Assembly (NCBI GenBank): GCA_024626585.2
Contig: JANKJI020000002.1
Span: 269,160,956-269,188,252 of the forward strand
From: Ginkgo biloba
Lineage: Eukaryota > Plantae > Ginkgophyta
Direction of reading: 5' to 3'
DNA length: 27,297 nucleotides
Shown here: positions 6,289 through 27,297 of the stretch, in pieces
How the letters are laid out: every line of letters starts with the position of its first letter
Numbering within the stretch: position 1 is the first letter of the stretch
Made by a program: the position numbers and the translations under genes
Notes under the pieces: generated by a model
What the model was told of the DNA's origin: nothing
The model's input: only the letters and a program-made list of their open reading frames with translations
Databases searched by the model: none

Positions 6289-7066
6289 TAGCTAATATGG
6301 TAGAGAGTACTCCCAAAGGGGAAGTTTAAGACATTTATAAAGGCTAGCTTACTTTGGACTTTGTGGTAGGATGAAGGACATTAATACCTTCTTAGTGATC
6401 CCTATTAATTCTCTTTTAAGAGTGTTTCTATTACCTTCCCATGTTTCATTTACCTTTTTTTTCTTATCTAACTAGCTTGCATGCAAACTTAATTACTAGT
6501 NNNNNNNNNNNNNNNNNNNNNNNNNNNNNNNNNNNNNNNNNNNNNNNNNNNNNNNNNNNNNNNNNNNNNNNNNNNNNNNNNNNNNNNNNNNNNNNNNNNN
6601 NNNNNNNNNNNNNNNNNNNNNNNNNNNNNNNNNNNNNNNNNNNNNNNNNNNNNNNNNNNNNNNNNNNNNNNNNNNNNNNNNNNNNNNNNNNNNNNNNNNN
6701 NNNNNNNNNNNNNNNNNNNNNNNNNNNNNNNNNNNNNNNNNNNNNNNNNNNNNNNNNNNNNNNNNNNNNNNNNNNNNNNNNNNNNNNNNNNNNNNNNNNN
6801 NNNNNNNNNNNNNNNNNNNNNNNNNNNNNNNNNNNNNNNNNNNNNNNNNNNNNNNNNNNNNNNNNNNNNNNNNNNNNNNNNNNNNNNNNNNNNNNNNNNN
6901 NNNNNNNNNNNNNNNNNNNNNNNNNNNNNTGGTAATGATAAACCTCAACTAAAAGATTTTGAAACCATCTCTTTTTAAAAAAAGTGGTGGTAAAATACAA
7001 ACTGGCCCTTAGATTGTGAAAGTTGGTTTTGGTTGTTGTGTTGTAATTGGTTAGGTGGTGAAGAAT

Positions 7067-8218
7067 ATGATGATGAAGAATTGGGGAAGAAGACAAATGG
7101 AAGAGCATCATCATATACTTAACATCTCAATGACACAGGAAGNNNNNNNNNNNNNNNNNNNNNNNNNNNNNGAGGGGGAGAAAGCCTGCTTCCTTGTCAA
7201 CTGGTCAGTTACTGGTAAAAGAGGCAGGAAGCATTCCACATGCTCTGACAAAGCATTGGCCAAGCCTTGCGAAGCAAACCCAAATGTCAATGCACCTGAA
7301 GAACTTGCAGAAGATAGAGACATGGCTTACTTTTTGATGATGCTTGCATGCAGTGGCAATGCCAATGGATCTGTTGAGGATGGAACCTTGGACCGAGAGA
7401 TGACCGAGGAGTCAGTCTATCAGTCCAAAACTCGGGTGCTTCTAGTACCCAAGTGTGAATCCGAGGGAAGTATTGAGGATTTAGATGGCCATGATGATCC
7501 ATCAACAAGGACCATAAACAAGAAGATGAAGAATAACAGAATGAGCAGGGTTAGGCCTAAGCCCAAGCCTAGAACTAGGACTAGGCCTGTTGGGGATGAT
7601 GAATCCAGAAGTTTCTTGGAGGATTTTGATGCGGGTCTTGGAGAAACAAGTGGAAAATACAAGTGTAACAAATGCAGCAAGGTGTTTAGTTCTCATCAGG
7701 CTCTGGGAGGCCACAGAGCTAGCCACAGGAAGGTGAAGCGCTGCTTTGCATCCACTAAGACTAAAAACATTGATGAACAAGTCCAAGCCCTGCAAACAGA
7801 AGAAGAAGAAGAGGAGGATATCACTGAGGAAGGTACTTTGAGAATACAGCGTTCTTGTTCAGTTTCAAGAGATGAGGTAAATAATTTGATTCGAGAAGGG
7901 AGTGTGGAGACAGTGTGCCTGAAGGCCAAGGGTCATCAATGCTCTATTTGTCATAAGGTTTTTCAGTCTGGACAAGCTCTGGGTGGGCATAAGAGATGTC
8001 ACTGGATTGGTGACAGAGTACCCACAGCACCCATGGAGACCAGCTTGATCTCCATAGATAAGCAAGATCAGAGTTTTCAAGTCAGAAATGGGCTTGTGGG
8101 GTTGCCTGACCTTAACCACCCACCACCAGTTGAAGAGGAGGATTTGGAAGTTGCTTACAGCATGACAGATATCGTTCCTGCCTTTGCAGGTAGTGTTGAC
8201 CAGAGGTTGAAGGTGTAG
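7067..8218 (+). CDS. Plant C2H2 (QALGGH) zinc-finger transcriptional repressor, ZAT/EPF C1 family, ZAT2/ZAT3(DAZ1/2)-like or ZAT1/4/9-like; N-terminus uncertain
   Basis: Open frame to TAG at 8218. Finger YKCNKCSKVFSSHQALGGHRASH at 7658-7726 is followed by RKVKRCFA. Finger HQCSICHKVFQSGQALGGHKRCHW at 7934-8005. Basic WSVTGKRGRK motif, L-box EDRDMAYFLMMLA, and EAR-like LPDLNHPP at 8102-8125. In-frame ATGs at 7067 and 7097 lie before a 29-N gap (7143-7171), so the start is provisional. Confidence 0.92.
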   Translation: MMMKNWGRRQMEEHHHILNISMTQEXXXXXXXXXXEGEKACFLVNWSVTGKRGRKHSTCSDKALAKPCEANPNVNAPEELAEDRDMAYFLMMLACSGNANGSVEDGTLDREMTEESVYQSKTRVLLVPKCESEGSIEDLDGHDDPSTRTINKKMKNNRMSRVRPKPKPRTRTRPVGDDESRSFLEDFDAGLGETSGKYKCNKCSKVFSSHQALGGHRASHRKVKRCFASTKTKNIDEQVQALQTEEEEEEDITEEGTLRIQRSCSVSRDEVNNLIREGSVETVCLKAKGHQCSICHKVFQSGQALGGHKRCHWIGDRVPTAPMETSLISIDKQDQSFQVRNGLVGLPDLNHPPPVEEEDLEVAYSMTDIVPAFAGSVDQRLKV

Positions 8219-11044: not shown

Positions 11045-11570
11045 TACGTTGGAGGTCATGCAATAACTGTGAACCAGAAGCCTTTAAAGTGACTTTTGAA
11101 GTCACAACCAAGCAGCAACTAGGTACAAAGATCAGATACACCCAGCCTACACCTATGATTGGTAGTTGAGGGCATAGAGCTCTTACTATCAGCATAGTAC
11201 AATGAACATGATAGTTTCAGAAAAAGGGATGGTATTTTAACATAGGATATGACAATGACAACAAAAGATAATGACAAGTTGGTCAGAAACAGTGGGTCCT
11301 TTGTGGGTTAATTCCAGCTGCAAAAGAGTCAGATGCAACAATATTTATGATCATCATGCCATGAAGGTGGAGGGCTCTCTGGGCAGCTGCTGGCCACATT
11401 AAAAATTGGGTCACCTAATAAGTTGAGGCAGGTGAATCTAACGCCAGTTGGACATTTGCAACTGCAACCCAAGATGAGATGAGGCTTCTGACATTGGCAG
11501 AAAGGAGAAAACAGAGGGGACCGTCATGGCGTTTAAAACAGTGCAAGGACAGATATGTACACACACCCTT
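11045..11570 (+). pseudogene. Decayed relic A of the PnsB1/NDF1 3' coding region
   Basis: Collinear frameshifted scraps: KPLK/KVT (cf. PPLKVS), ATRYKD (cf. AAKY), LVVEGIE at 11159 (cf. IVIHGIE), PLWV+IPAAKES at 11298-11331 (cf. PVFVIPHEKER), DATIFMIIMP (cf. DTSIVFITTP), GQLLA at 11381 (cf. GQLAA), VMAFKT (cf. IIASKT). By-eye alignment only. Confidence 0.5.
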
Positions 11571-11965: not shown

Positions 11966-12056
11966 ATTGGAAAGAAATCTATCACTCATCAAAATTCACC
12001 CATGGGCAGTCTGATTAGACAGACAGACAGTTTATCCATGACTCAACGTGTTGAAC
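11966..12056 (+). repeat. Partial copy of the intron-1 hairpin element (left arm), truncated by a 100-N gap
   Basis: AAGAAATCTATCACTCATCAAAATTCACCCATGGGCAGTCTGATTAGACAGACAGACAG aligns with AAGAAAACTATCCACTCATCAGAATGCACCAATGGGCAATTGATTAGACAGGTGGGCAG at 13157-13215. Confidence 0.8.
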
Positions 12057-12158
12057 NNNNNNNNNNNNNNNNNNNNNNNNNNNNNNNNNNNNNNNNNNNN
12101 NNNNNNNNNNNNNNNNNNNNNNNNNNNNNNNNNNNNNNNNNNNNNNNNNNNNNNNNAA

Positions 12159-12650
12159 GGGCACAATTTGGTAGGAATTAAGGCACCGGGGGGCAGAAAT
12201 TTGGTCACGGCAAATGCTAAGAAGAATCAATGGTTGGACCCATTTGATTTTGGAGACGACTCAGACATGGAATACGGAGACCTTTTTGCAGATGGGAAGC
12301 AGGATGCTGAGGAACCTAGGCCTCCTGACGACCCATTTAATGAATATGGTTTTCTAAAATTTCGTAAAGGTTACAATGTGGAGATTGCTTCACTTGGGGC
12401 ACGCGTGAGGGGTGATGTTAGGGCGTGCTGCTGTATGGTGGCTGGGGGTGTTTACGAGAATCTGCTGTTTTTTCCTGTCATTCAGCTGCTGAAAGAAAGA
12501 TATCCTGGAGTGACCTTAGATGTAGTGGCCAGTGCAAGGGGCAAACAGACTTATGAAATGAATAAGTATGTCAGATGGGCTATGGTTTATGACGTTGAGG
12601 AAGAGTTTGTTGCGCCCGCAGACTACACTGAGATGATTGGCAAACTTAAG
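12159..12650 (+). CDS. PNSB1: Photosynthetic NDH subunit of subcomplex B 1 (PnsB1/NDF1/NDH48), first coding exon; start codon and most of the transit peptide lost in a gap
   Basis: Uninterrupted translation KKNQWLDPFDFGDDSDMEYGDLFADGKQD...YGFLKF.KGY.VEIASL...RGDVR.CCC...GGVYENLLFFP.IQLLKERYPGV...RGKQTYEMNK.VRWA.VYD...YTEMIGKLK closely matches the PnsB1 N-terminal half. Similarity ends exactly at AAG|GTAGGC, a phase-0 GT donor at 12651. Confidence 0.93.
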
Positions 12651-12656
12651 GTAGGC
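12648..12656 (+). other. 5' splice donor of PnsB1 intron 1
   Basis: AAG|GTAGGC coincides with the end of homology and a drop to AT-rich sequence. If unspliced, the frame runs 23 more codons to TAG at 12720-12722. Confidence 0.8.
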
Positions 12657-13018
12657 TTCGAGGGCATGGGCGTTCATTTTTCTATTTATTGCCTTGATAA
12701 TGTAAAAGGTTTAGAAGTCTAGGCCATTTTGTATTAATTCTATAAACCTAACTCTGTATATTCTGAAATTTATTTACCAGACAAAAAAGGAAACCTTGAT
12801 TTTATAAATCTCAGACATCTTCTACAGAGTGGGGGTTTTATGGTGATTCCATGAGAACAGAACTTGTGATCAAAATTGCACCCCTCCCTAGCCCTTTTAA
12901 GGGTTCTGAACCTTGCCAAAAGGATAACATATTTCCAAGTTTTGGTCTTCCAAAAAAAACCCAGTTATATGTTTTCTCCTCTCCCAGTGGAAGGATCAAG
13001 ACTTTACTAACTTGCATG

Positions 13019-13110
13019 CAAGGATCAAATTTAAGACTTAGATTCATTGCGCTATGCCATAGAAGTGCAATTGAAAAATGCCCTTGAAATGAGAAGCAAA
13101 ATCATATTTA
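13019..13110. mobile_element. Partial terminus of the same hAT MITE family as 16841-17117, in opposite orientation
   Basis: CAAGGATCAAATTT at 13019 equals the reverse complement of the MITE right end. Weaker similarity continues (TTAGA..CATT...ATAGAAG.GC). Confidence 0.55.
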
Positions 13111-13179
13111 CACACTTCAAGAAAAGGGAGACATGAACGTATGGCTGTCAATTGTGAAGAAAACTATCCACTCATCAGA

Positions 13180-13287
13180 ATGCACCAATGGGCAATTGAT
13201 TAGACAGGTGGGCAGCTTATTCTGTCTCACAGTGTGCTAGACAAGAGCTGCCTGCCTGTCTAATCAACATGCTGCCCATCGGTGCAT
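13180..13287. repeat. ~108-nt imperfect inverted repeat (foldback hairpin) in PnsB1 intron 1
   Basis: ATGCACCAATGGGCA pairs with TGCCCATCGGTGCAT (14/15). TTGATTAGACAGGTGGGCAGCT pairs with AGCTGCCTGCCTGTCTAATCAA (20 Watson-Crick + 2 G:U). Inner TGTCT/AGACA and CAC/GTG stems. Confidence 0.9.
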
Positions 13288-13336
13288 GTAGGCCGTATAA
13301 CCACCTTGTTTGATGTTTATATTAGGTAGGTAGCTC

Positions 13337-13975
13337 AGGTCATTGAAATGGGAGGAATCCACATGGGCAGCCGGCCGGGACATGGATAGGGCGGATCAGG
13401 ATGGATATATACACAATGCTTATCCATGCATTTCCCTTAAAAAGTGTTTTATAGTAAGCGAACATCATTGAAGGGAATGCCAAAGCAGAAATAGTATTCA
13501 AAGAGGCCTTTTTATCATGGTATATACATTAATGGAAACCGCCAGTTTTTTGGTTAAAATAGACAAAAACTTGATGGAACATCATATGCACAATGATTTT
13601 TCTTTTTTTTTGTAGGAATTTAAAGGAAGACAGCATGTGCTAATGAATGTACTCACAGGTGGCGTGCTAATTGCACATTTGTGAAAGTGCACGGCTTAAG
13701 GAGGTTGCAGTTTCAAAATGGGCCGGATGCAGTATACACAGTGGCTGTGTATGCAGTGCAATTTTTTTTACTGCATGCATAGGAAAGCCCATTGACCGAA
13801 CAAATGGATGGTGTTACAAGACATGCATACTTAACTCTGCTTTGTCTGAAATAACTCTTGGGAAGGTCACCTGTGTACTTTTTTGTGTTCTAAGCTGTTG
13901 GTCTGCCTCCCTGTGGGTCAAGGCTCAAAAGATTTAAGAATCATTGGAAGAAGCAATGGGGCAGTCAGAGATGTC
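13337..13975 (+). pseudogene. Decayed relic B of the PnsB1/NDF1 3' coding region
   Basis: STWAAG/PGH (cf. STKLAGLGH) and RADQDGYIH at 13388 (cf. ARDRVSYIY). After a polypyrimidine-TAG acceptor-like site ending at 13615, one frame reads NLKEDSMC**MYSQVAC*LHICESARLKEVAVSKWAGCSIHSG (cf. NLSE..MYTQ..WL...LRVSLSRKVKEVVAAKY..AG..IHG), then FFT..IDRTNG and LGKVTCVLF, and in a shifted frame RIIGRSNGAVRDV (cf. IIASKTGKLADI). In-frame stops and deletions. Confidence 0.6.
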
Positions 13976-13983
13976 TGTCAAAG

Positions 13984-14022
13984 TGTATGTATATATACAC
14001 ACACATACATGATGCATGCATG
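13984..14022. repeat. Compound simple repeat (TATG/TA/CA/ATGC)
   Basis: TGTATGTATATATACACACACACATACATGATGCATGCATGC-type tract. A similar tract lies at 11615-11646. Confidence 0.8.
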
Positions 14023-16840
14023 CCTTTGGGAGATGATCAATTTGAGAATAGGAAAAATGTTAAAGATTAGCAGTTGAGTGATTACATTCTATTTTTGCTT
14101 TAGTTTACCAGTAAATGTAAATGTAATTGGTTTGACAAATTCTCCACCATGTCATGTAAAAAAAGTTGACATCGAATCCATAGGTTTTGGTAAGTTAGTC
14201 TGCATTAACTGAATCCAACGGTAATTCTTGCAACAATCATGGCTCTTGATTCTCTAAGTTACTGGTCGACCCTTACAAAGGGGGAGGGTGTCAACTTCAA
14301 AGTTCAATGAGAATGACTTTATCTTTTAGAAAATACAAGCTTAAACATACTTTCAAAAAGGACAACGATTAGTATTCGTACTAGTGATCTCTTTTAAGTT
14401 TATGCACCCATTGCCAAGGATAAAACGTCAAACAAGTTGGTCATATTGCAACTATTAGATTGAAATGTTAAACAAAATGTTTTAGAATTCGAGGCCTAAT
14501 CCCACTCCATCTTCATGGCACTTCTTTTAGGTGTCCAATAACTATTTGGTCTCTAAGATATGTCTTGTAGAAATTATGAGACCATTTTTTTGAACATTAC
14601 GTTAGTGTGCAAAAATTTGTACAAGTGGATTATGTAAACATTCAACATAAATAGGAAATAAAGCATTAGCTTGTAATGAAAGATAGCTCACATGTTTAAG
14701 ACAAGGTCCGTGAGAGAAAGAAGAGGGTGAAGGGTCAAAACCTAAGGGGTGGAAATATTGTTTCCATTTTTAATTTCACGTGAATTGCCTAAAAACTTTC
14801 CATGCTAAAATAATAGTCGGGGATGTGCCTTATTAGGTAATTGGGTGGTAATGGACTACATGTATATTTTCTTTGAGAGAAAAATGCCCTTTGAGAACAC
14901 TGGTGCATTCAAATATGTTTTTGTAGTGCACAAGCTTACATGTTCTACATATGGAAAACTATATGTCACCAACTTGTTATATTTCTAAAATTTTCCAAAA
15001 AATAAATTCTCATATAGGGAAATTGCTATAAAGTATTAGCCATTATACATTTTTTTGAGAATTTTATTATATTTGCCAAATTTTGTACTAACTTGTAGTG
15101 AAATATATTTTTTTAATGTGAATTTACAAACATTATTATTTAATCCTTATCTTATATATTTTAAAGATTCACTAACCNNNNNNNNNNNNNNNNNNNNNNN
15201 NNNNNNNNNNNNNNNNNNNNNNNNNNNNNNNNNNNNNNNNNNNNNNNNNNNNNNNNNNNNNNNNNNNNNNNNNNNNNNNNNNNNNNNNNNNNNNNNNNNN
15301 NNNNNNNNNNNNNNNNNNNNNNNNNNNNNNNNNNNNNNNNNNNNNNNNNNNNNNNNNNNNNNNNNNNNNNNNNNNNNNNNNNNNNNNNNNNNNNNNNNNN
15401 NNNNNNNNNNNNNNNNNNNNNNNNNNNNNNNNNNNNNNNNNNNNNNNNNNNNNNNNNNNNNNNNNNNNNNNNNNNNNNNNNNNNNNNNNNNNNNNNNNNN
15501 NNNNNNNNNNNNNNNNNNNNNNNNNNNNNNNNNNNNNNNNNNNNNNNNNNNNNNNNNNNNNNNNNNNNNNNNNNNNNNNNNNNNNNNNNNNNNNNNNNNN
15601 NNNNNNNNNNNNNNNNNNNNNNNNNNNNNNNNNNNNNNNNNNNNNNNNNNNNNNNNNNNNNNNNNNNNNNNNNNNNNNNNNNNNNNNNNNNNNNNNNNNN
15701 NNNNNNNNNNNNNNNNNNNNNNNNNNNNNNNNNNNNNNNNNNNNNNNNNNNNNNNNNNNNNNNNNNNNNNNNNNNNNNNNNNNNNNNNNNNNNNNNNNNN
15801 NNNNNNNNNNNNNNNNNNNNNNNNNNNNNNNNNNNNNNNNNNNNNNNNNNNNNNNNNNNNNNNNNNNNNNNNNNNNNNNNNNNNNNNNNNNNNNNNNNNN
15901 NNNNNNNNNNNNNNNNNNNNNNNNNNNNNNNNNNNNNNNNNNNNNNNNNNATATATATTTGAGTTCTCAATTCAATGTTTGAAAAACTTATAGTTGTGTC
16001 ATATCTATTTATATGCTAAGTATTTAATAAGTTTTAATATTAGAAAACACCTACTCTATAGGTAATACCTCCATATAATTAAAGGACTAAATTGGGTTAG
16101 AGAGTGATAATTGCCAATTTTTTGTTACCTTTAAAAATAATTGTACGAACTTATAAAATAAAGTAGAAAATTTATTATTATAGAATAGTGATTCAAAATA
16201 CCAAGGATTGGGATTTCCCAACTAATGGCCATGATCTCGAATCATATGGACTCAATTCTGCTATGTGTATAATATAATCCCTATAGCCATGGGCAAATGC
16301 ACCTAACATCATTGAGACTAAGCCTATTTAACCTTAAGGAGCTCAAACTTATCATTCCTTATTATATTTGTGCAGATGCATTTGTATTTATATAATTACA
16401 ATACAAAAAATTGTAATGAGAATTCATTATTTAGAAAATCATTTTCCTTTATAATTAAGAAGATTAATAAAATAACCAAAATCTAAGCACACTATTAATA
16501 TGTTACTGAGACCAATAATGCTAATAATATTATGGATAACAAGTTTCAAACTACCTCATCGATGCAACCAAACCTTTTTTATCTTTCCTTTTCTTTTTCT
16601 TTGTGTGTGTGTGAGAGAGGACACACAAGATGGAAATGAAAAATACTTGGGATCCTAATCTAGATTAGGAAAAAATCCCATCAAACTAAAGTTTTATTCA
16701 TCTTGCTTAAATTTAATCCCTTGTGCCTCACCTTTCGTTATTGAACTTGTCTTTATGATTAAAACCGTTTGATGAAGGATACTTTGAATGTTCCTTTTTA
16801 TTTAGCCAGCCAAATATTTGATTATTCATTTAGTCGTATG

Positions 16841-17117
16841 TAGGGATCAAATTTGACGGGGAGGGTCCTCCTTCCTTGTAAAGGGGGAATTGTATTATAA
16901 ATTATTAAATAAAATATTAGGAATGATCTTTCCCTACAAATCATTATTATAAATGAATAAGAAATTATAAACTTAAAAAATTATTTATAAAGTGCCCTTC
17001 TTTTTACAAGGAAAATCTTATTGTGCCATTTCATTTGAAGCATAAAAAATGTAGAGCTCTTCTATAATGAGTAAAATGGGTTCTAAAGGGAATGGACGCC
17101 TTCAAATTTGATCCTTG
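16841..17117. mobile_element. Non-autonomous hAT (Ac/Ds-like) MITE, 277 bp
   Basis: TIRs TAGGGATCAAATTTGA / TCAAATTTGATCCTTG (13-bp perfect core; cf. the Ac TIR (C/T)AGGGATGAAA). 8-bp flanking duplication GTCGTATG (16833-16840) / GTCCTATG (17118-17125), 7/8 identical. Inner inverted repeat TTCCTTGTAAA / TTTACAAGGAA. Confidence 0.88.
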
Positions 17118-17619
17118 GTCCTATGTTACCTTATTGATGTATATGTATAGTGCTTAGGTTAAAGAAATTGAGTTTTTTGTGGAAGTCGTTGAGGCCAAAG
17201 TGGCACCAATTTCCTTCTTGTGTTTTTCTTTGAATTTTTAAATAATTCTATTTCTTATGTACTATTAGATTTGGAGTAGCTTAATTATAGTGATTCATAT
17301 AACTATTATTTTTGTACTATTCATACATATTCTTTTATTGTTTGGTCAAGGAAGTACAACCAAACATAAGTACCAAGCGAAGATATAAAAATGACCTGAA
17401 ACAAGAAATTAAACTATTGCTATTTGTAAGATAAATGACAACTTTNNNNNNNNNNNNNNNNNNNNNNNNNNNNNNNNNNNNNNNNNNNNNNNNNNNNNNN
17501 NNNTTATTTAAATTTATATGACTTACAATATTCAATGCCAAGTGATATTATAATGGATAACTAAATAAGAAACACATAGCATAGTGGAAAGGAATAGACA
17601 TATATTTGTTGTACTTTAG

Positions 17620-18035
17620 TTGTAGAGATTAGAAGTAAAACAAGAAAGATTATATACAACTAAGTTTTTAGGCAAAGCACATAAAAGACACCAAAATCTC
17701 ACAAACAAAGGATAATATGATAAGTTTATTATCGCATAAGACTAAAATGAATTGCATAAAGAGAAAAACATTTAAGAGTGCCATCTATTACATCTATCCA
17801 AGATGTTTCCTTTTATTTGATTAGAATAGAATATTGGTAAATTTTAATATACGAACACAAATTACAAAAACATTAAATAAAGACACCATTAAATGCATTA
17901 AGGGGCACTAAGACCAATAAAGGTGAACTAGTCTAAAACCTAAAATAACTAAAATATTACAAAATAATATAAAACTCAAAGACATAAAAGTGCATATAAA
18001 AAATTGAGTTGCTTAATTATTGCTCCCTTCTCAAT
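17620..18035 (-). mobile_element. Possible decayed LTR with adjacent polypurine tract
   Basis: A-rich LTR-like composition ending at GCTCCCTTCTCAA (minus strand TTGAGAAGGGAGC, PPT-like). Boundaries approximate. Confidence 0.3.
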
Positions 18036-19449
18036 GAGATCCACATCAATTGGTTGGTTAATAATCTTTTAATCTTTATTAAGGATCCACTCCTTACTGT
18101 TGTTGTAATTAATCATAATATTGTTTCTTTAGCAATGTTAGAATTTTAACATAACCTACAAAGACATCTTAAAGAAACTATCTAGATTAATGACACATTA
18201 GTGAGATGCAAATTATAAAAAAGAAAATGATACTAAAGCAGTCAAACACAAACTTGAGGGCATACTTATGATAAAATATATAATATCATTGGTGTAAATA
18301 TTAGTCTAAGTAAAACTTGTTGAAGAGATTAATAAAAATGTTCATATAACCTAATTTAGAAAGATTTAAGTTCCATAACATCTTGAAATGTTCTAGCTAA
18401 TAGAAATATAAAATATATAATTACAAAAATGAATAACCTATAAACTATCATGTAAGAAGTGAGGATATCAATATTCTAAGCTATGAAAGGTTATACAACT
18501 AGAAAGTTTTTAACGAAGAACTAGATAATATATTTATCAAATTCCACATCATGCAAGATGGGATGAAGCCTAGAATCTTATGACTAGTAATTATTTCAAT
18601 CTCCTCTTCTCATACATCTACAAAACTTATGCAACTTAGCTTTAACAAATCATATTAACATAAACCAAGCCAAATAAAATGTAATAATCCAAAAGTAAGG
18701 CTTATAGACCACATATGAAGGACCTTTGGATGTGGTAGTTCATGAAAATAATGGAGATACATTCTTCAAGGAAAACCATGTTATGTCCCCAAATTAATGT
18801 ATATGACTATGGTTGACAATGTTAATTGTGTAGAGACAAGTGGTACATCCATGTTTATAAGGGTAATCACAAATTNNNNNNNNNNNNNNNNNNNNNNNNN
18901 NNNNNNNNNNNNNNNNNNNNNNNNNNNNNNNTAAGGGCATTCAAGCCTCAGTTGTAATGTATAATTCATTTTGATCTTAATTATTTTAGAGCATTTTACT
19001 CATTTATGACCTTTTAGAACTCAGGTGAGTCCTTTAATGACTTCTTAGGCTCAGGTGAGCTCCATTGTGATATTATGATCTATTTTATTTTGTGGCATGG
19101 ATTTTATATTGTACACAATTATCATGTATATTGTTGTATCTCCACATTTACATCATTTAGTGCAAAATTTTAATTGTAGAACCCATATGGGTTGCTACAT
19201 AAGCATTGGTAATTTGATATTTAGTTATGATGAGCTTGAAGAATAATGATTGGTTCTCTTGTAATGATTAAAATCCTTTCTAATTACACGTTAAATGACC
19301 CACTCCAAATACCATTCAAACAAGAATATTGAATCAATGAGCATCCATANNNNNNNNNNNNNNNNNNNNNNNNNNNNNNNNNNNNNNNNNNNNNNNNNNN
19401 NNNNNNNNNNNNNNNNNNNNNNNNNNNNNNNNNNNNNNNNNNNNNNNNN

Positions 19450-21900
19450 GATCCCAAATTTTATTTTAAGGTTATCTTCCACATATTAGAAATCTCTATT
19501 CATACTTGATGGTATCTAGAGGTGAGATTAATCTTAGTGAAAAATTTTTCATCATGGAGTTGATCAAGAAGGTATTTGATATAGGAAAGAGGACACCAAT
19601 TCTTAATACTAATATTGTTAAGCACTCCATAGTCAATGCACAAGTGCTAATTCCCATATTTTTTTGGAATGAGTAGATCTAGAGATCCATAAGGAGAAGT
19701 ATTAGGTTAGATTATTCAATAATTAATTAATTGCATAAGTTATATTTATAATAATTTATTCTAGGTTAGACTCTTCCATTATCATAGGTGTATTGTAGAC
19801 TGATTTGTTGGGCAATGGTGCTCACTGAAGAATATCAATGGAATGATGGATGGACCTAAGTGGAGGAATACACTTAGGGTCCTTCAATACATCATTGTAT
19901 GAAGCAAGAATGTCTTATATATCTTTGGGAGGTACTATATATTGAGTTTAGACTTGTCTAACCACATAAATTATAAATTTCTTAGTGGCATTGGTAAATT
20001 TGACTATAGCATCCTTGAAAATGGGAGTAATAGAATGTGAGGAATTAAACTAAAATGTCTTATTATATTTTTATAGCTTATAGGTTCTATGGTATGTATC
20101 GTAGATTGATTATAGATCATAATAATAGGGATTTCCAATCGAGATATCACAATAGTCCATGGGAGTTATATCATAATCTAGAGTGTCAATGAAAGATTCA
20201 TCAACCAAGGTCACATTGTAAAATTTGTCAACCCTTATTGGTTATCCATTTATCTTGATCTAGACAAGATGATAAGGGTGTAGATGTACCATTTTAGGAA
20301 GTTTAAGGGATGTGACTAAGTCCTAGGAAACATGGTTCTTCATGTTGTCATTATCAATGATGTAGAGGACCAAGCGGTAATTGGCTTACTAGTTCTATGT
20401 GAATAAGGCCACTTTATCTATGGAAGGATATTCTTTAGTAATAAAGACACATTTAGGGTTTGATTCGTTGGATTACTAACCACTACTAATTGATCTACCT
20501 CTATTACTTCTTCTTTATTTTACTTAGTTACAAGTCTGTGATATTTTTCTCCTTACGATTTTAGACATTCTTCATTTGAGTGTCTATATGTTGTATGATA
20601 ATTACAATATTTTGAAGAACCCTTGCCATTTGGCTTGGGTTTATACATTAGGAAAGGAGCAAAAGAAAAAGAAGAGAATTTAGACTTTTTAGAAGCTTCA
20701 AGATCTTTGGAGTGTTGCTGACTTAGTCACTCCCTTCCGTTGCACTTTGCCTTCCATCTTTAAAGCAAATTGGAAGGCTTATTCAAGAGAGTTGATTGTC
20801 AAAAGATCCATTTTTCGTTGTAGATGAGAAAAGAGTCCACTTGTGAATTTTTTCTTAAGGATCTCATCTAGGTCTTGGATCTCAAGCATGATGGACATCT
20901 TGTTGAAGCAGTCGATGTACTTTTGCATTGTTTGACTAGATGCTTGGCGAAGATGCAACCACTATTTTGTGAGCTCCTTGTGATACCTATGGGGGTAAAA
21001 CCTTCCTCAGACTACAACTTTGAATTTGTCCCATCTTTGAATGGGAGGTAAATTGTCGGCAACGAGGTGGCGNNNNNNNNNNNNNNNNNNNNNNNNNNNN
21101 NNNNNNNNNNNNNNNNNNNNNNNNNNNNNNNNNNNNNNNNNNNNNNNNNNNNNNNNNNNNNNNNNNNNNNNNTGTGTGACTCTTTAGGTGATAATGGGAG
21201 AGATACAGACTTAGGGGCATATCACTAAAGGTTGTATAAGGTATGTAGAACCTATAAATTTGAAAGGTATGGAAATAATCTTCTTAAAGAGTGTTACTTT
21301 TAGATATACACTATGGTTATTTTTGAAAACTTAGGAAGGTCATACAACTCATAGAGGGTTGAATAATCTTGGTAGAGGTCATTGGAGGGTCACTTAGATA
21401 AGGAGGCCACTATGGAGAAGTCATCATACTCTAATATGACTTTAAAGGTGAATAATAATATCTAGATAGAAGGGTTTCTTTACAAAAAAATAGTGGCTAG
21501 AAATACCGCTTTTCTAGGCTATGATTCCAACTAATATAACTTACTAAGAAAGATGAGAAAAGACTAGATCTATGGCTATAAGAGAGAGAAGCATAAATTG
21601 CTCCAATACAGAAAACACATGTAGGGATTTTATTCATAAAAACCTAGCTTCAAATACATAAGGGTAGTGGAATTTAAATAATAGAGAGGCTCATTATATA
21701 CAATTGATACCTTATGCAACTATCCTTGTCTAAAATAATAATATGTTGATTATTAAGTGGTAGTTATATTTTTAAATATCCACATGTTTTCTAATTCACA
21801 AAACATACTAAAGTATAAACACACACACCAACCAATGAGTATTTATAATATGTGATAAGCACACACAAAATAAACATCCTAACTCTAGACTAGGGTGTTC
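19450..21900 (-). mobile_element. Decayed Ty3/gypsy LTR retrotransposon: 5' LTR - PBS - gag - zinc knuckle - protease - RT (partial)
   Basis: On the minus strand: PBS TGGAATCATAGC (21518-21529, 2 mismatches to TGGTATCAGAGC); gag PIQRWDKFKVVV*GRFYP...WLHLRQ (~21050-20750); knuckle YCNYHTTYRHSNEEC (~20600); protease IIDNDNMKNHVS...PMDYCDISIGNPY (~20360-20120); RT PKKYGN*HLCIDYGVLN...LLDQLH..KFFTKINLTSRYHQV (~19720-19450). LTR outer boundary approximate. Confidence 0.88.
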
Positions 21901-22385
21901 ATTAAACCTCTATAATGAAATTCTAGTGTTATGTAACCTAAATTAATGACTAATATTGAATTATAANNNNNNNNNNNNNNNNNNNNNNNNNNNNNNNNNN
22001 NNNNNNNNNNNNNNNNNNNNNNNNNNNNNNNNNNNNNNGACCATGACCAATAACTAAGGTTGAAACAAATGATTACAAAAAAGAATAAAGGCCCAAAATA
22101 AGGAAAAATATGGTAAAGCATTGAAGTCCAAAGAATGGGTTAAAGAAATATTTGTAGAAAGGAAAAAACCCTACTCAAATTAAAGACTAGCTCTAAACAC
22201 CAATATATACAAAGTTGAGCCCTGGATCCCAATGAAAAATCCATAGAAAGATGGGTGGAAATAAACAAATTGATAACAAACCCATNNNNNNNNNNNNNNN
22301 NNNNNNNNNNNNNNNNNNNNNNNNNNNNNNNNNNNNNNNNNNNNNNNNNNNNNNNNNNNNNNNNNNNNNNNNNNNNNNNNNNNNN

Positions 22386-24726
22386 ATTGGAAAATCATAA
22401 ATCCTTAAGTATATTAGGCTCCTTTAAAATAAATTACACTTCTTCAAATTCATATATAGATTCTCCTTCCAAATAATATCAAACACCTATCTCAAGTGAT
22501 CCAAATGTTCTCCTCTTGACTTGCTAGAAATTGGATTGTCATCCAAATAAATAATGATACTCTTATCAATGAGAAACTTTAGGATTATGTTCATTAATCT
22601 CATAAATGTGATTGTCACATTCGTTAATCTGAATGGAATAACTCTCCAATCATACAACCCATCTCTCATTTGGAAAGATATTTTCCACTCATCTCCTTCT
22701 TGGATTCTAATTTAGTAGTATCTTCTCCTCAGATCCACCTTTAAAAAGTATGAAGAACCTACTAAGATATCCATCACATCATGCATTCATGGCATTGGAA
22801 ACCCATAATTGATGATTACCTTTTTTATGGCTCATGAATCCACACACATGCGTCACATCCCATCATTCTTTGATGTGAGTANNNNNNNNNNNNNNNNCAA
22901 CTATTAATGATCAACTTGCACAACTTACCTTCAAATTTTTATTTAGTTCTAAAAATATTTTTTCTCTATTCCAACTTGTTCGCTTCCTTTGGGCCATTCA
23001 CTAGACCTTCTATACATCATTCACTCCACTCTTATTGGTCATTCACCCAACCTCCTTGGTCATTTGATGAAATACCTTGATTGTTTATTGAACTCTTTTG
23101 GTCATTTCTATCATCCTTTGGTCATTTTCTTGTCACTCCTTNNNNNNNNNNNNNNNNNNNNNNNNNNNNNNNNNNNTAACATTTTTTCAGCCATAAAGTT
23201 TTTTATTTTTTTGAAGTAGATGGTTTAGCCTTCACTTCCTCTTAATCCAAATTTGATATTAGTTCCTCTCTCCTTGATCTTTCATCATTTCTTATAGGGA
23301 ATTGAAATGCTCTATGGCTTTCAACTCTGTAAATGAGATAAACCACATGTCTTTTGGACACATTGAACCTCCCATCAATTCCTCATCCTCTTTATGATAT
23401 GAATTCACCTCATCCTTAGGTATATTATACAACATGCTCACCTCTTTGTCTTGGTGGAAAATAATACCTTCAAGTTGTAGTCCATTCACTATTGGAGTTA
23501 CCTTCTCTACTCTAAGTCCTAGTTCCTCCTCTCCACTTCTAAACTAAGGATTCTATCCCCTTTGTGACTATACTTTTCCTTGTACTTTGATCCAATTTTT
23601 CTTTCATCTTCATGACTAATTGGTATTCTTCTTTCACTATATTCATCTATTGCATGGTAATTTTATCCTGAATGGAAAAGCTCAACCCATTCACATATCT
23701 CATTTTCATCTTCTTCTTATTCTCCTCATGTCCATTCCTTATGGAAAATTTACAAAAATCATCCGTTTACCCTTACATACTCTTTTCTATCTTCTTCAAG
23801 TTTTAAATTTCTTAGAATAACCTTTATTCATAATTTATAGGTAAGAATTTACCCTTAATTTTAGCCACCATTTTGTACTAATTCTTGATTTTGTCCTTAC
23901 TGTTTCTCACCCTATCCTTCTACAAATTCTCCCATAATATAACTACATGTCCTTTCATCCTTATGTATGCAAACTTTACTCACTTAGGGTCCTCCAACTC
24001 TTCCCACTTGAAGTACTTCTCCATAACCCCAATCTAATCCAACAACTATTTAAGCTTTAAACTCCCTCCAAAATCTAGAAATTCCATCTTTGTTCCACCT
24101 TTCTTATTCTTCAATAGTTCCAATAATAATTCTCCCACATCTTTTTTCCTCTATTACTCTCTCTATTTCTCTTCTTCTTCTTCCTCTAATTCTAATTCAT
24201 ATTTCTTTTCAGGCCTATGTCTTTAGGTTTTTTCTCCAATTCCTTAATTCACCTCCTTAGGGATTCAATTTATCTATTAGTTTTTCTTGCTCCTTTATAT
24301 ACTCTTAATGCCATTCCTTGAATGTTCTCCTTACTACAACCAACAATTTAACAAGCCTTCTTGGACTTCCTTAAAATAATTCCATAATGAGCCAACCTAA
24401 GTTTTGATACTAGATGACATAGTTAGAAGAGGTGATAGACCTTAGGGAGGGGATGAATCACTCATCCAATGTAAAATATTCAACAAAACACCCTTGCAGG
24501 AAATTTTAGAGCATACAATAATAGATGACACTTTTTATTAAAATCTAAAACTCACACAAGCTTAAATTACAAGACTTATAAAATATCTTATGAAGGGGAT
24601 TTATATTACATGGCACAACTACCCCATAGGTATTTACATACAAGAAGTAAAGTTACAAGGATTTAAAGTTATTAGAGGAAAACCCCTAATACATAGAGGG
24701 GAATTCCTTTTCGATTCTTTGTTCAT
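22386..24726 (-). mobile_element. Decayed Ty3/gypsy retrotransposon, CRM-like chromovirus: LTR - PBS - gag - RT
   Basis: On the minus strand: LTR-end CA at 24415-24416; decayed Met PBS TAGTATCAAAAC (24401-24412); gag LLD*IGVMEKYFKWEE...VKFAYIRMKGH...KGKFLP...RYVNGLSFSIQD (~24100-23590); RT KNDGM*RMCVDS*AI...IRIQEGDEWK...DGLYDWRVIPFRLTN..TFMRLMN...YLDD...NLKKC (22880-22386). CVDSRAI and FMRLMN are typical of CRM-clade RT. Confidence 0.88.
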
Positions 24727-27297
24727 NNNNNNNNNNNNNNNNNNNNNNNNNNNNNNNNNNNNNNNNNNNNNNNNNNNNNNNNNNNNNNNNNNNNNNNNNN
24801 NNNNNNNNNNNNNNNNNNNNNNNNNNGCCATGGATCAATATTTTCTTATACTTCATCACTTCACATTAATAGTTTTTGTATGTTCACCTTAATTTTATAA
24901 AATAATTACATAGATAAGTCCATATGATTGAGTGAGTATTATTATTTATTATATTAGATAATTGTTGGAATAGTAATTCCTATAAAATATGTATTAGGGT
25001 TTATTTTTTCATAATTGAATAATAATTCTTTTAATTACATAACTAAGTTCTATGATTTCTCTTTGGAAATTGGTTTATTAAATCGTAAAATCTAAGTGGA
25101 ACTTTGAGAGAATAATTCATCCTTAGTAGATTCTTAGATTACCATGGCCTAAGTTTTAAATTTTATGATTCAAAATTTTTTCATGTATGATGAAGAAGGA
25201 TTTCAAAATATTTCATTTTAGCATGACTAGTCAGCCTTTAGGAAAAGGCACTATGGTGGATAGGAAAACCCATAATGACACATAATAAAATGTGTATTTA
25301 ATCTAGGGAAAGGTTCAACACATACCATAAAATGTTCAATTCATCCTACAATTGAACTTGAGAGTTAATTTTTGGCCTAGATCAGCGAGTTTCTCAATTG
25401 TAAACCATATTGTCACATTCTTAAGGTTCAATTCAACATTCAATAGATGTAAGAATAATCCATTTGGTATAAAATACTTTTACAGGTGACTCTTAGAGAA
25501 TAATTCACACTTTTACAAAGCTACTTCAATTTTTGTTAAAAATTACTTCTCCAACACCATGCCAATTAGCATAAGAGATTTCTTTCAAGTTCTAATTTTT
25601 TCTATATTGCCAACACAAATTGAATTTATTTTTTTATCTTCCTTTTCTCTTTGGTTCTTATATATTTATGTATTTTCATACTTTATGAAATTTTTATGTA
25701 AAATAACAAACCTATAAATACTCCACCATCACCTACTTATTAAAGGAAGTAGAATTATTAAAGCATCAGGTTGTTACTCTTACAAAAAATCTTGAGGCTA
25801 TGAGTTACAATACTTCTAGTGGGGGTTCCTCTTTAATGACATCTTATCTTTTGGATTGAAAGGAATTGATCAAGATCAACACCTATATTTATATAGTACC
25901 ATTTGATGGTTCTATTAATGCTAAGAAGGTATATGATTAGATTTATGATCTCNNNNNNNNNNNNNNNNNNNNNNNNNNNNNNNNNNNNNNNNNNNNNNNN
26001 NNNNNNNNNNNNNNNNNNNNNNNNNNNNNNNNNNNNNNNNNNNNNNNNNNNNNNNNNNNNNNNNNNNNNNNNNNNNNNNNNNNNNNNNNNNNNNNNNNNN
26101 NNNNNNNNNNNNNNNNNNNNNNNNNNNNNNNNNNNNNNNNNNNNNNNNNNNNNNNNNNNNNNNNNNNNNNNNNNNNNNNNNNNNNNNNNNNNNNNNNNNN
26201 NNNNNNNNNNNNNNNNNNNNNNNNNNNNNNNNNNNNNNNNNNNNNNNNNNNNNNNNNNNNNNNNNNNNNNNNNNNNNNNNNNNNNNNNNNNNNNNNNATA
26301 AGAGTTGGATATAATTTTGATTATGATCCCAAATAGAACTTACAACTTTGTATTGAATATTAACAAGAAATTAAAGAAGACTTTATTACAAGATAAAGGA
26401 CCATCTAGTTCATTTAATGGTACAAATAAAAATAAGGGTTCTTATTTTTCTTAATAATTCTCTTTATTTCTCTCAAAGGGAGAGAAATAATAAGATTTTA
26501 TAAAGAATAAGTATGGGCCTATTGACCAAACTAAATTTTTTAATGCCACCAGTGACATGGGCACACCGATGATGAGTTTTTGAGAATACCAAGAATAAGG
26601 GAATACATATTAAGAATATGATGGTGTGTTAGGAATAAGAGAACATGTTTGACATTGAATGGAAATTAAGATGGATAGATCATTATACCTAACTAACACA
26701 AGTACTACTATCTCTCTACCATGCTACAAGTATCTTCTTATTCAATAAGTACATATGAAGTAGTGCCTGATGAAAGTCATTCTTGATAATGGAAGAANNN
26801 NNNNNNNNNNNNNNNNNNNNNNNNNNNNNNNNNNNNNNNNNNNNNNNNNNNNNNNNNNNNNNNNNNNATCTTAGACAAGTGACTACTAGTAGGCTACATA
26901 GCCTTGTGAATAATGTATCATAAAATTTAGGGGTTTTAATTACAAAAGCCATATTTTTATAACGAGAGGTTGCATGTGGCTCTCAAATTAACATTTTGGG
27001 TATATTAGGTCATTGAATCAATAATCACACCTCATCATACAACTCATGTATTCTTTTTTAGTTATTAATAAAAAGTGTCATTTGTTGGTTATTGCAGGTC
27101 CATTCTGCAACTACTTTTCTCTGATCCTCTAAAAAATCTCAAAATTTGTCATCACCCCATCATAATCGATATGGATCCATTTTAATTAATTAATCAACCT
27201 ATTTTTCCCTCATTTTATCCTTTCCTATTTTTTTTGGGTAGTGAGGCCCATACTGCTTATTTTCACTAAATGTTATTTTTTAGCACACCTTCTTACA

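Follow-up and report, generated by a model that had tools for sequence, protein, structure and literature searches.

The locus studied here raises the question of whether a first exon of PnsB1 (NDF1) that stands alone in a long stretch of Ginkgo biloba DNA is the remnant of a dead gene, the source of a shortened protein or the beginning of a working gene. PnsB1 is a nuclear-encoded subunit of subcomplex B of the chloroplast NDH. The original prediction, made from the 27,297 nucleotides of this stretch (the window), had described a pristine exon 1 followed by the rubble of the later exons. This was read as uneven decay in a lineage without ndh genes, and two explanations were offered: (a) a protein made from exon 1 alone, or (b) splicing of exon 1 over dead duplicate exons to functional exons further on or inside a gap. 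The features discussed are listed in Table 1.

Table 1. Coordinates of the exon, gap, intron and claimed relics in the window
Feature	Position	Strand	Remarks
100-N assembly gap	12057..12156	.	conceals the upstream end of exon 1, including start codon, transit peptide and 5' UTR
PnsB1/NDF1 exon 1, readable part	12159..12650	+	164 codons, corresponding to Arabidopsis PnsB1 residues 46-192
Intron 1 start	12651..12722	+	donor GTAGGC, then in-frame read-through tail VGFEGMGVHFSIYCLDNVKGLEV and stop, not used as coding
Intron 1, readable extent	12651..27297	+	no exon 2 in readable sequence; 12 N gaps, the largest at 15178-15950
Claimed 3' exon relic	13337..13975	+	PnsB1 similarity not above chance
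Claimed second decayed copy	11045..11570	.	PnsB1 similarity not above chance

Identity, limits and constraint of exon 1

Similarity searches revealed that exon 1 matched the conserved N-terminal region of experimentally identified PnsB1 chains. The PnsB1 chains of solved NDH-PSI supercomplexes gave E values of 3.7e-67, 3.3e-61 and 1.9e-56 for 7wff_a (residues 46-192), 9grx_1 and 7eu3_6, respectively. A full-length PnsB1 profile of 157 orthologues scored 278.8 bits on exon 1 and at most 4.7 bits on the rest of the window. An exhaustive phmmer search returned 79 relatives of exon 1, and nearly all of the strong ones aligned as far as residue 164. A Pfam search with exon 1 alone showed no meaningful match; the Pfam signal of the family lies in the C-terminal half.

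With Arabidopsis PnsB1 (NDF1/NDH48, At1g15980) the exon aligned end to end, had the blocks WLDPFD, RGDVR.CCC, GGVYENLLFFP.IQL and RGKQTYE.NK in common and shared the ...LK boundary, and its spliced continuation started with the YYD motif of the family. The differences from the Arabidopsis protein are that only about one third of the Ginkgo protein is visible and that three highly conserved residues are changed (P35S, P69R and N137Y).

The stop-free PnsB1 exon of the original prediction was thus borne out by the open frame and by the matches to PnsB1 chains, while the word pristine was overstated, as the exon adjoins the 100-N gap and neither the start codon nor the transit peptide is visible. 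The frame was open from 12159, its first readable base after the gap, and orthologues extended about 35-60 residues further at the N-terminus than the readable exon. The missing start codon presumably falls within the gap. Throughout, the window is draft sequence broken by 22 gaps totalling 3,211 N.

The closest protein was KI387_030630 of Taxus chinensis (P0198), with 76% identity over exon 1, followed by the conifer mRNA product P0085 (476 aa, locus L001) with 74%; angiosperm PnsB1 proteins reached up to 74%. Searches with P0006, with exon 1 and with the gymnosperm-weighted alignment A1 as queries returned no full-length PnsB1 of the same species and no match above 76% identity. P0085 carries PF01075 at residues 345-459 and represents the complete gymnosperm protein expected from the Ginkgo gene. 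Both it and the Taxus protein are the closest sequences found, yet they belong to other lineages.

Constraint was estimated against the mRNA of L001, the closest full-length orthologue, which comes from a conifer close to Taxus. The comparison showed a dN of 0.179 and a dS of 1.50, giving a dN/dS of 0.12, which is approximate with dS near saturation. This ratio, which the original prediction had proposed as a check, is far from 1. Among the 59 columns conserved at 95% or more in the 157 orthologues, exon 1 differed at three (P35S, P69R and N137Y, in exon-1 numbering). Seven orthologues were inspected in the same way (conifer, Amborella, lycophyte, moss and three others), and six of them differed at 2-6 of the 59 columns and Amborella at none. 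The three changes in Ginkgo are not assembly errors, because the transcript contigs described below agree with the genome. Exon 1 genuinely belongs to PnsB1 and evolves under purifying selection.

Splicing at the exon 1 donor

The GT donor at 12651 (AAG followed by GTAGGC at 12650/12651) and the read-through stop at 12720-12722, both pointed out in the original prediction, were confirmed in frame. Reading past the donor adds 23 codons, and the resulting frame was called as 188 codons including the stop.

A word search with a 604-nt query, of which exon 1 made up about 81%, showed that 20 public sequencing runs contain the stretch, and 78-89% of the sampled query words were present in seven runs guessed to be RNA. 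By their dates and structure (2016, 2018, and 2019 with several samples), the DNA runs look like one draft genome project and later resequencing. Four runs were compared with 12157-15177, namely X15, X18 and X20, which were only guessed to be RNA, and X24, which is declared as RNA. One contig each was obtained from X15, X18 and X20 (studies P8, P11 and P12), with lengths of 2168, 2015 and 2282 nt, respectively. All three had 0 differences from the genome over the 494 nt of 12157-12650, and all three departed from it exactly after 12650. The sequence past the junction was inspected for 30 nt, and the same 30 letters were found in the three contigs, AATAAGTACTATGATTTAGTTGTGTCAAGC. In frame they encode NKYYDLVVSS, compared with NRYYDLVISTKLAG at the start of exon 2 in the conifer orthologue and with the RYYDM.LSTKLAG that the original prediction had looked for. 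Run X24, of which only about 2% was sampled, had no reads on 12157-15177.

In this family a conserved phase-0 intron follows ...LK and the next exon begins with x-[RKE]-YYD, and the donor and the NKYYDLVVSS continuation of the Ginkgo transcripts have this arrangement. Because the contigs leave the genome at 12650 and continue as NKYYDLVVSS, the exon 1 donor is used and joined to a proper exon 2. The contigs carried 1102-1254 nt beyond the junction, which would accommodate the rest of the coding sequence (about 810 nt) and a 3' UTR. Ahead of 12157 they had another 397-572 nt, and the missing 5' end accordingly belongs within the gap at 12057-12156 or on its far side. The C-terminal glycosyltransferase-family-9-like domain of PnsB1 has about 270 residues, and the Ginkgo contigs are long enough to contain it.

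Two further observations were made on the runs. A 196-nt contig of X15 lay inside intron 1 (12699-12894). Its depth was 5.7, compared with 86.5 for the contig of the exon, and pre-mRNA, intron retention or carried-over DNA could each account for it. Run X13, labelled as organism B, had 89% of the sampled exon-1 query words; the sample may have been mislabelled or mixed, or a very close relative may be its source.

Explanation (a) holds that exon 1 is read through to the stop at 12722 and that the resulting protein is kept for an NDH-independent role. It can draw on the 23 codons that stay open beyond the donor and on the small X15 contig, but the donor at 12650 was used in all long contigs, and these 2.0-2.3 kb contigs hold 1.1-1.25 kb past the junction, which contradicts it. 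The intronic contig, for its part, had the far lower depth given above, began only at 12699 and was not joined to the exon, and the recognisable glycosyltransferase-9-like part of PnsB1 sits in the C-terminal half that such a protein would lack. Such open tails also occur in unspliced ORF calls of many plants whose PnsB1 is complete. In many public PnsB1 "proteins" of other plants, 190-270 residues long, ...LK is followed only by V and a brief tail of unrelated sequence, as in the Logan/JGI ORFs P0001, P0003, P0004, P0008, P0010, P0201, P0202, P0203 and P0246. The ...LKV tails of these plants show that the intron sits at the same place throughout land plants and that ORF callers routinely read through the intron on unspliced or genomic contigs. 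These short public proteins look like truncated or read-through calls and not like real short isoforms, and the 188-codon read-through frame at the Ginkgo locus is the same artefact, not evidence of a truncated protein. The Taxus protein KI387_030630 (222 aa) likewise ends just past exon 1 with an unrelated tail, and appears to be an incomplete annotation of a gene with the same long-intron structure. Taken with the transcripts, this makes a protein of exon 1 alone scarcely credible.

Search for later exons and their relics

The absence of a readable exon 2 up to 27297, stated in the original prediction, was confirmed in three ways. Neither tblastn nor the profile search showed any PnsB1 signal downstream of exon 1 in the window, and the 30-nt exon 2 start taken from the transcripts had 0 matches in the window at up to 3 mismatches. 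The exon 2 continuation was used solely as a DNA pattern within the window. The largest downstream gap comprised 773 N.

The "collinear fragments with stops, frameshifts and deletions" that had been described at 13337-13975 did not hold up. Using tblastn with all retrieved PnsB1 proteins at permissive settings, nothing below E = 0.006 and nothing collinear was obtained outside exon 1. The shuffle control set 15 diverse C-terminal parts of 267-271 residues against each region and against 200 shuffled versions that kept its dinucleotide composition. The best tblastn HSP at 13337-13975 reached 20.4 bits, against 19.0 +/- 1.6 for the shuffles (32 of 200 at least equal), and the best collinear plus-strand chain scored 47.4 against 44.3 +/- 9.4 (53 of 200 at least equal). 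The alignment is thus not significant relative to shuffled controls, an outcome that the original prediction itself had named as removing the relic. The readable intron (12651-15177) likewise did not stand out from its shuffles. The claimed second copy at 11045-11570 had a best HSP of 20.0 bits against 18.6 +/- 1.5, and its plus-strand chain was matched in 82 of 200 shuffles. An any-strand chain in the latter region, reached by 7 of 200 shuffles, was rejected as a nominal result from one of 12 tests, on the wrong strand and with a profile score of -0.3 bits.

A C-terminal profile HMM of 157 PnsB1 parts, run with filters off on every stop-free six-frame piece of the window, gave a best score of 2.8 bits anywhere. 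The best scores were -1.3 bits at 13337-13975, with a summed positive score of 0, and -0.3 bits at 11045-11570, with a summed score of 0. The power of this search was determined on a conifer C-terminal coding sequence decayed in silico with 1 indel per 100 nt, its own protein being excluded from the profile. All 20 copies with 30% substitutions were detected (with the best piece scoring 10.0 bits or more and the pieces together 25.9 or more), as were most copies at 40% substitutions. In a repeat search, exon 1 and the claimed relic regions had no repeat in common. Disrupted copies of later exons were not found near exon 1, where scores equalled those of shuffles and stayed at or below 2.8 bits. 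The "uneven decay" is intron sequence read by eye.

A pseudogene in an ndh-less lineage, with exon 1 intact by chance and the 3' exons decayed in place, would agree with the lack of a readable exon 2 in the window and of a visible start codon. It is opposed by the missing above-shuffle PnsB1 similarity at 13337-13975, 12651-15177 and 11045-11570, by a profile that recovers 20 of 20 copies with 30% substitutions and indels, by spliced contigs with mean word depths of 86-336 and by the low dN/dS of exon 1, and is extremely unlikely. Nuclear NDH subunit genes are known to be lost in a coordinated manner in ndh-less plants, namely Pinaceae, gnetophytes, some orchids and Erodium (PMC4404220). In contrast to such losses, the Ginkgo gene is expressed, spliced and constrained, and decay products are absent. 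Among gymnosperm plastomes, all ndh genes are reported to be lost in Pinaceae and gnetophytes and kept in Conifers II (PMC12807257). The nearest proteins to exon 1 come from ndh-retaining gymnosperms (Taxus, 76%), and the notion of uneven decay in an ndh-less lineage is unsupported.

Other features were seen in the window. About 4 kb upstream of exon 1, on the same strand, a 387-codon open frame (7055-8218, plus strand, with a gap at 7143-7171) codes for a Q-type C2H2 zinc-finger protein of plants that has two QALGGH fingers (Pfam zf-C2H2_6, E 5e-21), and looks like an intact, intron-less neighbouring gene. Intron 1 contains an imperfect hairpin of about 108 nt at 13180-13287 (DNA fold -37.3 kcal/mol, z = -6.1). 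A similar arm, ATGGGCAGTCTGATTAGACAG, occurs at 12002-12022, within 11975-12056 directly before the 100-N gap. The hairpin element and the similar arm probably represent a MITE-like repeat, which may have caused the assembly break at the 5' end of exon 1.

A probably long first intron and the nature of the locus

With the exon 2 start absent from the readable window, intron 1 must span more than 14.6 kb or have its 3' end inside a gap. The first intron of PnsB1 is far shorter in small-genome angiosperms than at the Ginkgo locus. Introns of Ginkgo average 7,884 bp, and 12.45% of them are longer than 20 kb (PMC5118899); a first intron of more than 14.6 kb is therefore unremarkable in this genome.

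The transcripts might instead derive from an identical or near-identical second copy elsewhere, the locus itself being a 5' fragment produced by segmental duplication or by a scaffolding mis-join. Exon 2 is indeed absent from 14.6 kb of downstream sequence, the assembly at the locus is full of gaps (22 gaps, 3,211 N), and contigs cannot tell identical copies apart. The contigs of three runs, however, showed 0 differences from this locus over 494 nt, the low-depth X15 contig covers the locus's own intron at 12699-12894 as pre-mRNA would, and the absence of exon 2 needs no special cause where introns above 20 kb are common (PMC5118899). A second copy as the source, the strongest of the competing readings, is unlikely. 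It is very unlikely, too, that the locus is a stand-alone copy of exon 1, or has its further exons on another scaffold, and is transcribed with a minor read-through product, the N-terminal third of PnsB1, without being the source of the full-length mRNA.

The locus is very probably the 5' part of an ordinary, functional nuclear PnsB1 gene with a long intron; it is neither a pseudogene nor the source of a truncated protein. Exon 1 is expressed and spliced at 12650/12651 to an exon 2 located beyond 27297 or in a gap. On this reading, the remaining exons, of about 270 codons, would be intact and would lie more than 14.6 kb downstream or partly in an N gap, the genome would have a single copy of exon 1, and the species would keep its plastid ndh genes. 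Explanation (b) of the original prediction stands in part: exon 1 is indeed joined to a real exon 2, downstream or inside a gap, while the dead duplicate exons over which it was to splice do not exist.

The PnsB1 made from this gene would do its usual job in the NDH-PSI supercomplex, and the locus adds nothing new to the biology of the NDH complex. The result is mainly a correction: what had been taken for "rubble" is AT-rich intron sequence. An intact gene in a giant gymnosperm genome normally looks just like this, with one isolated first exon and then many kb of non-coding DNA and gaps.
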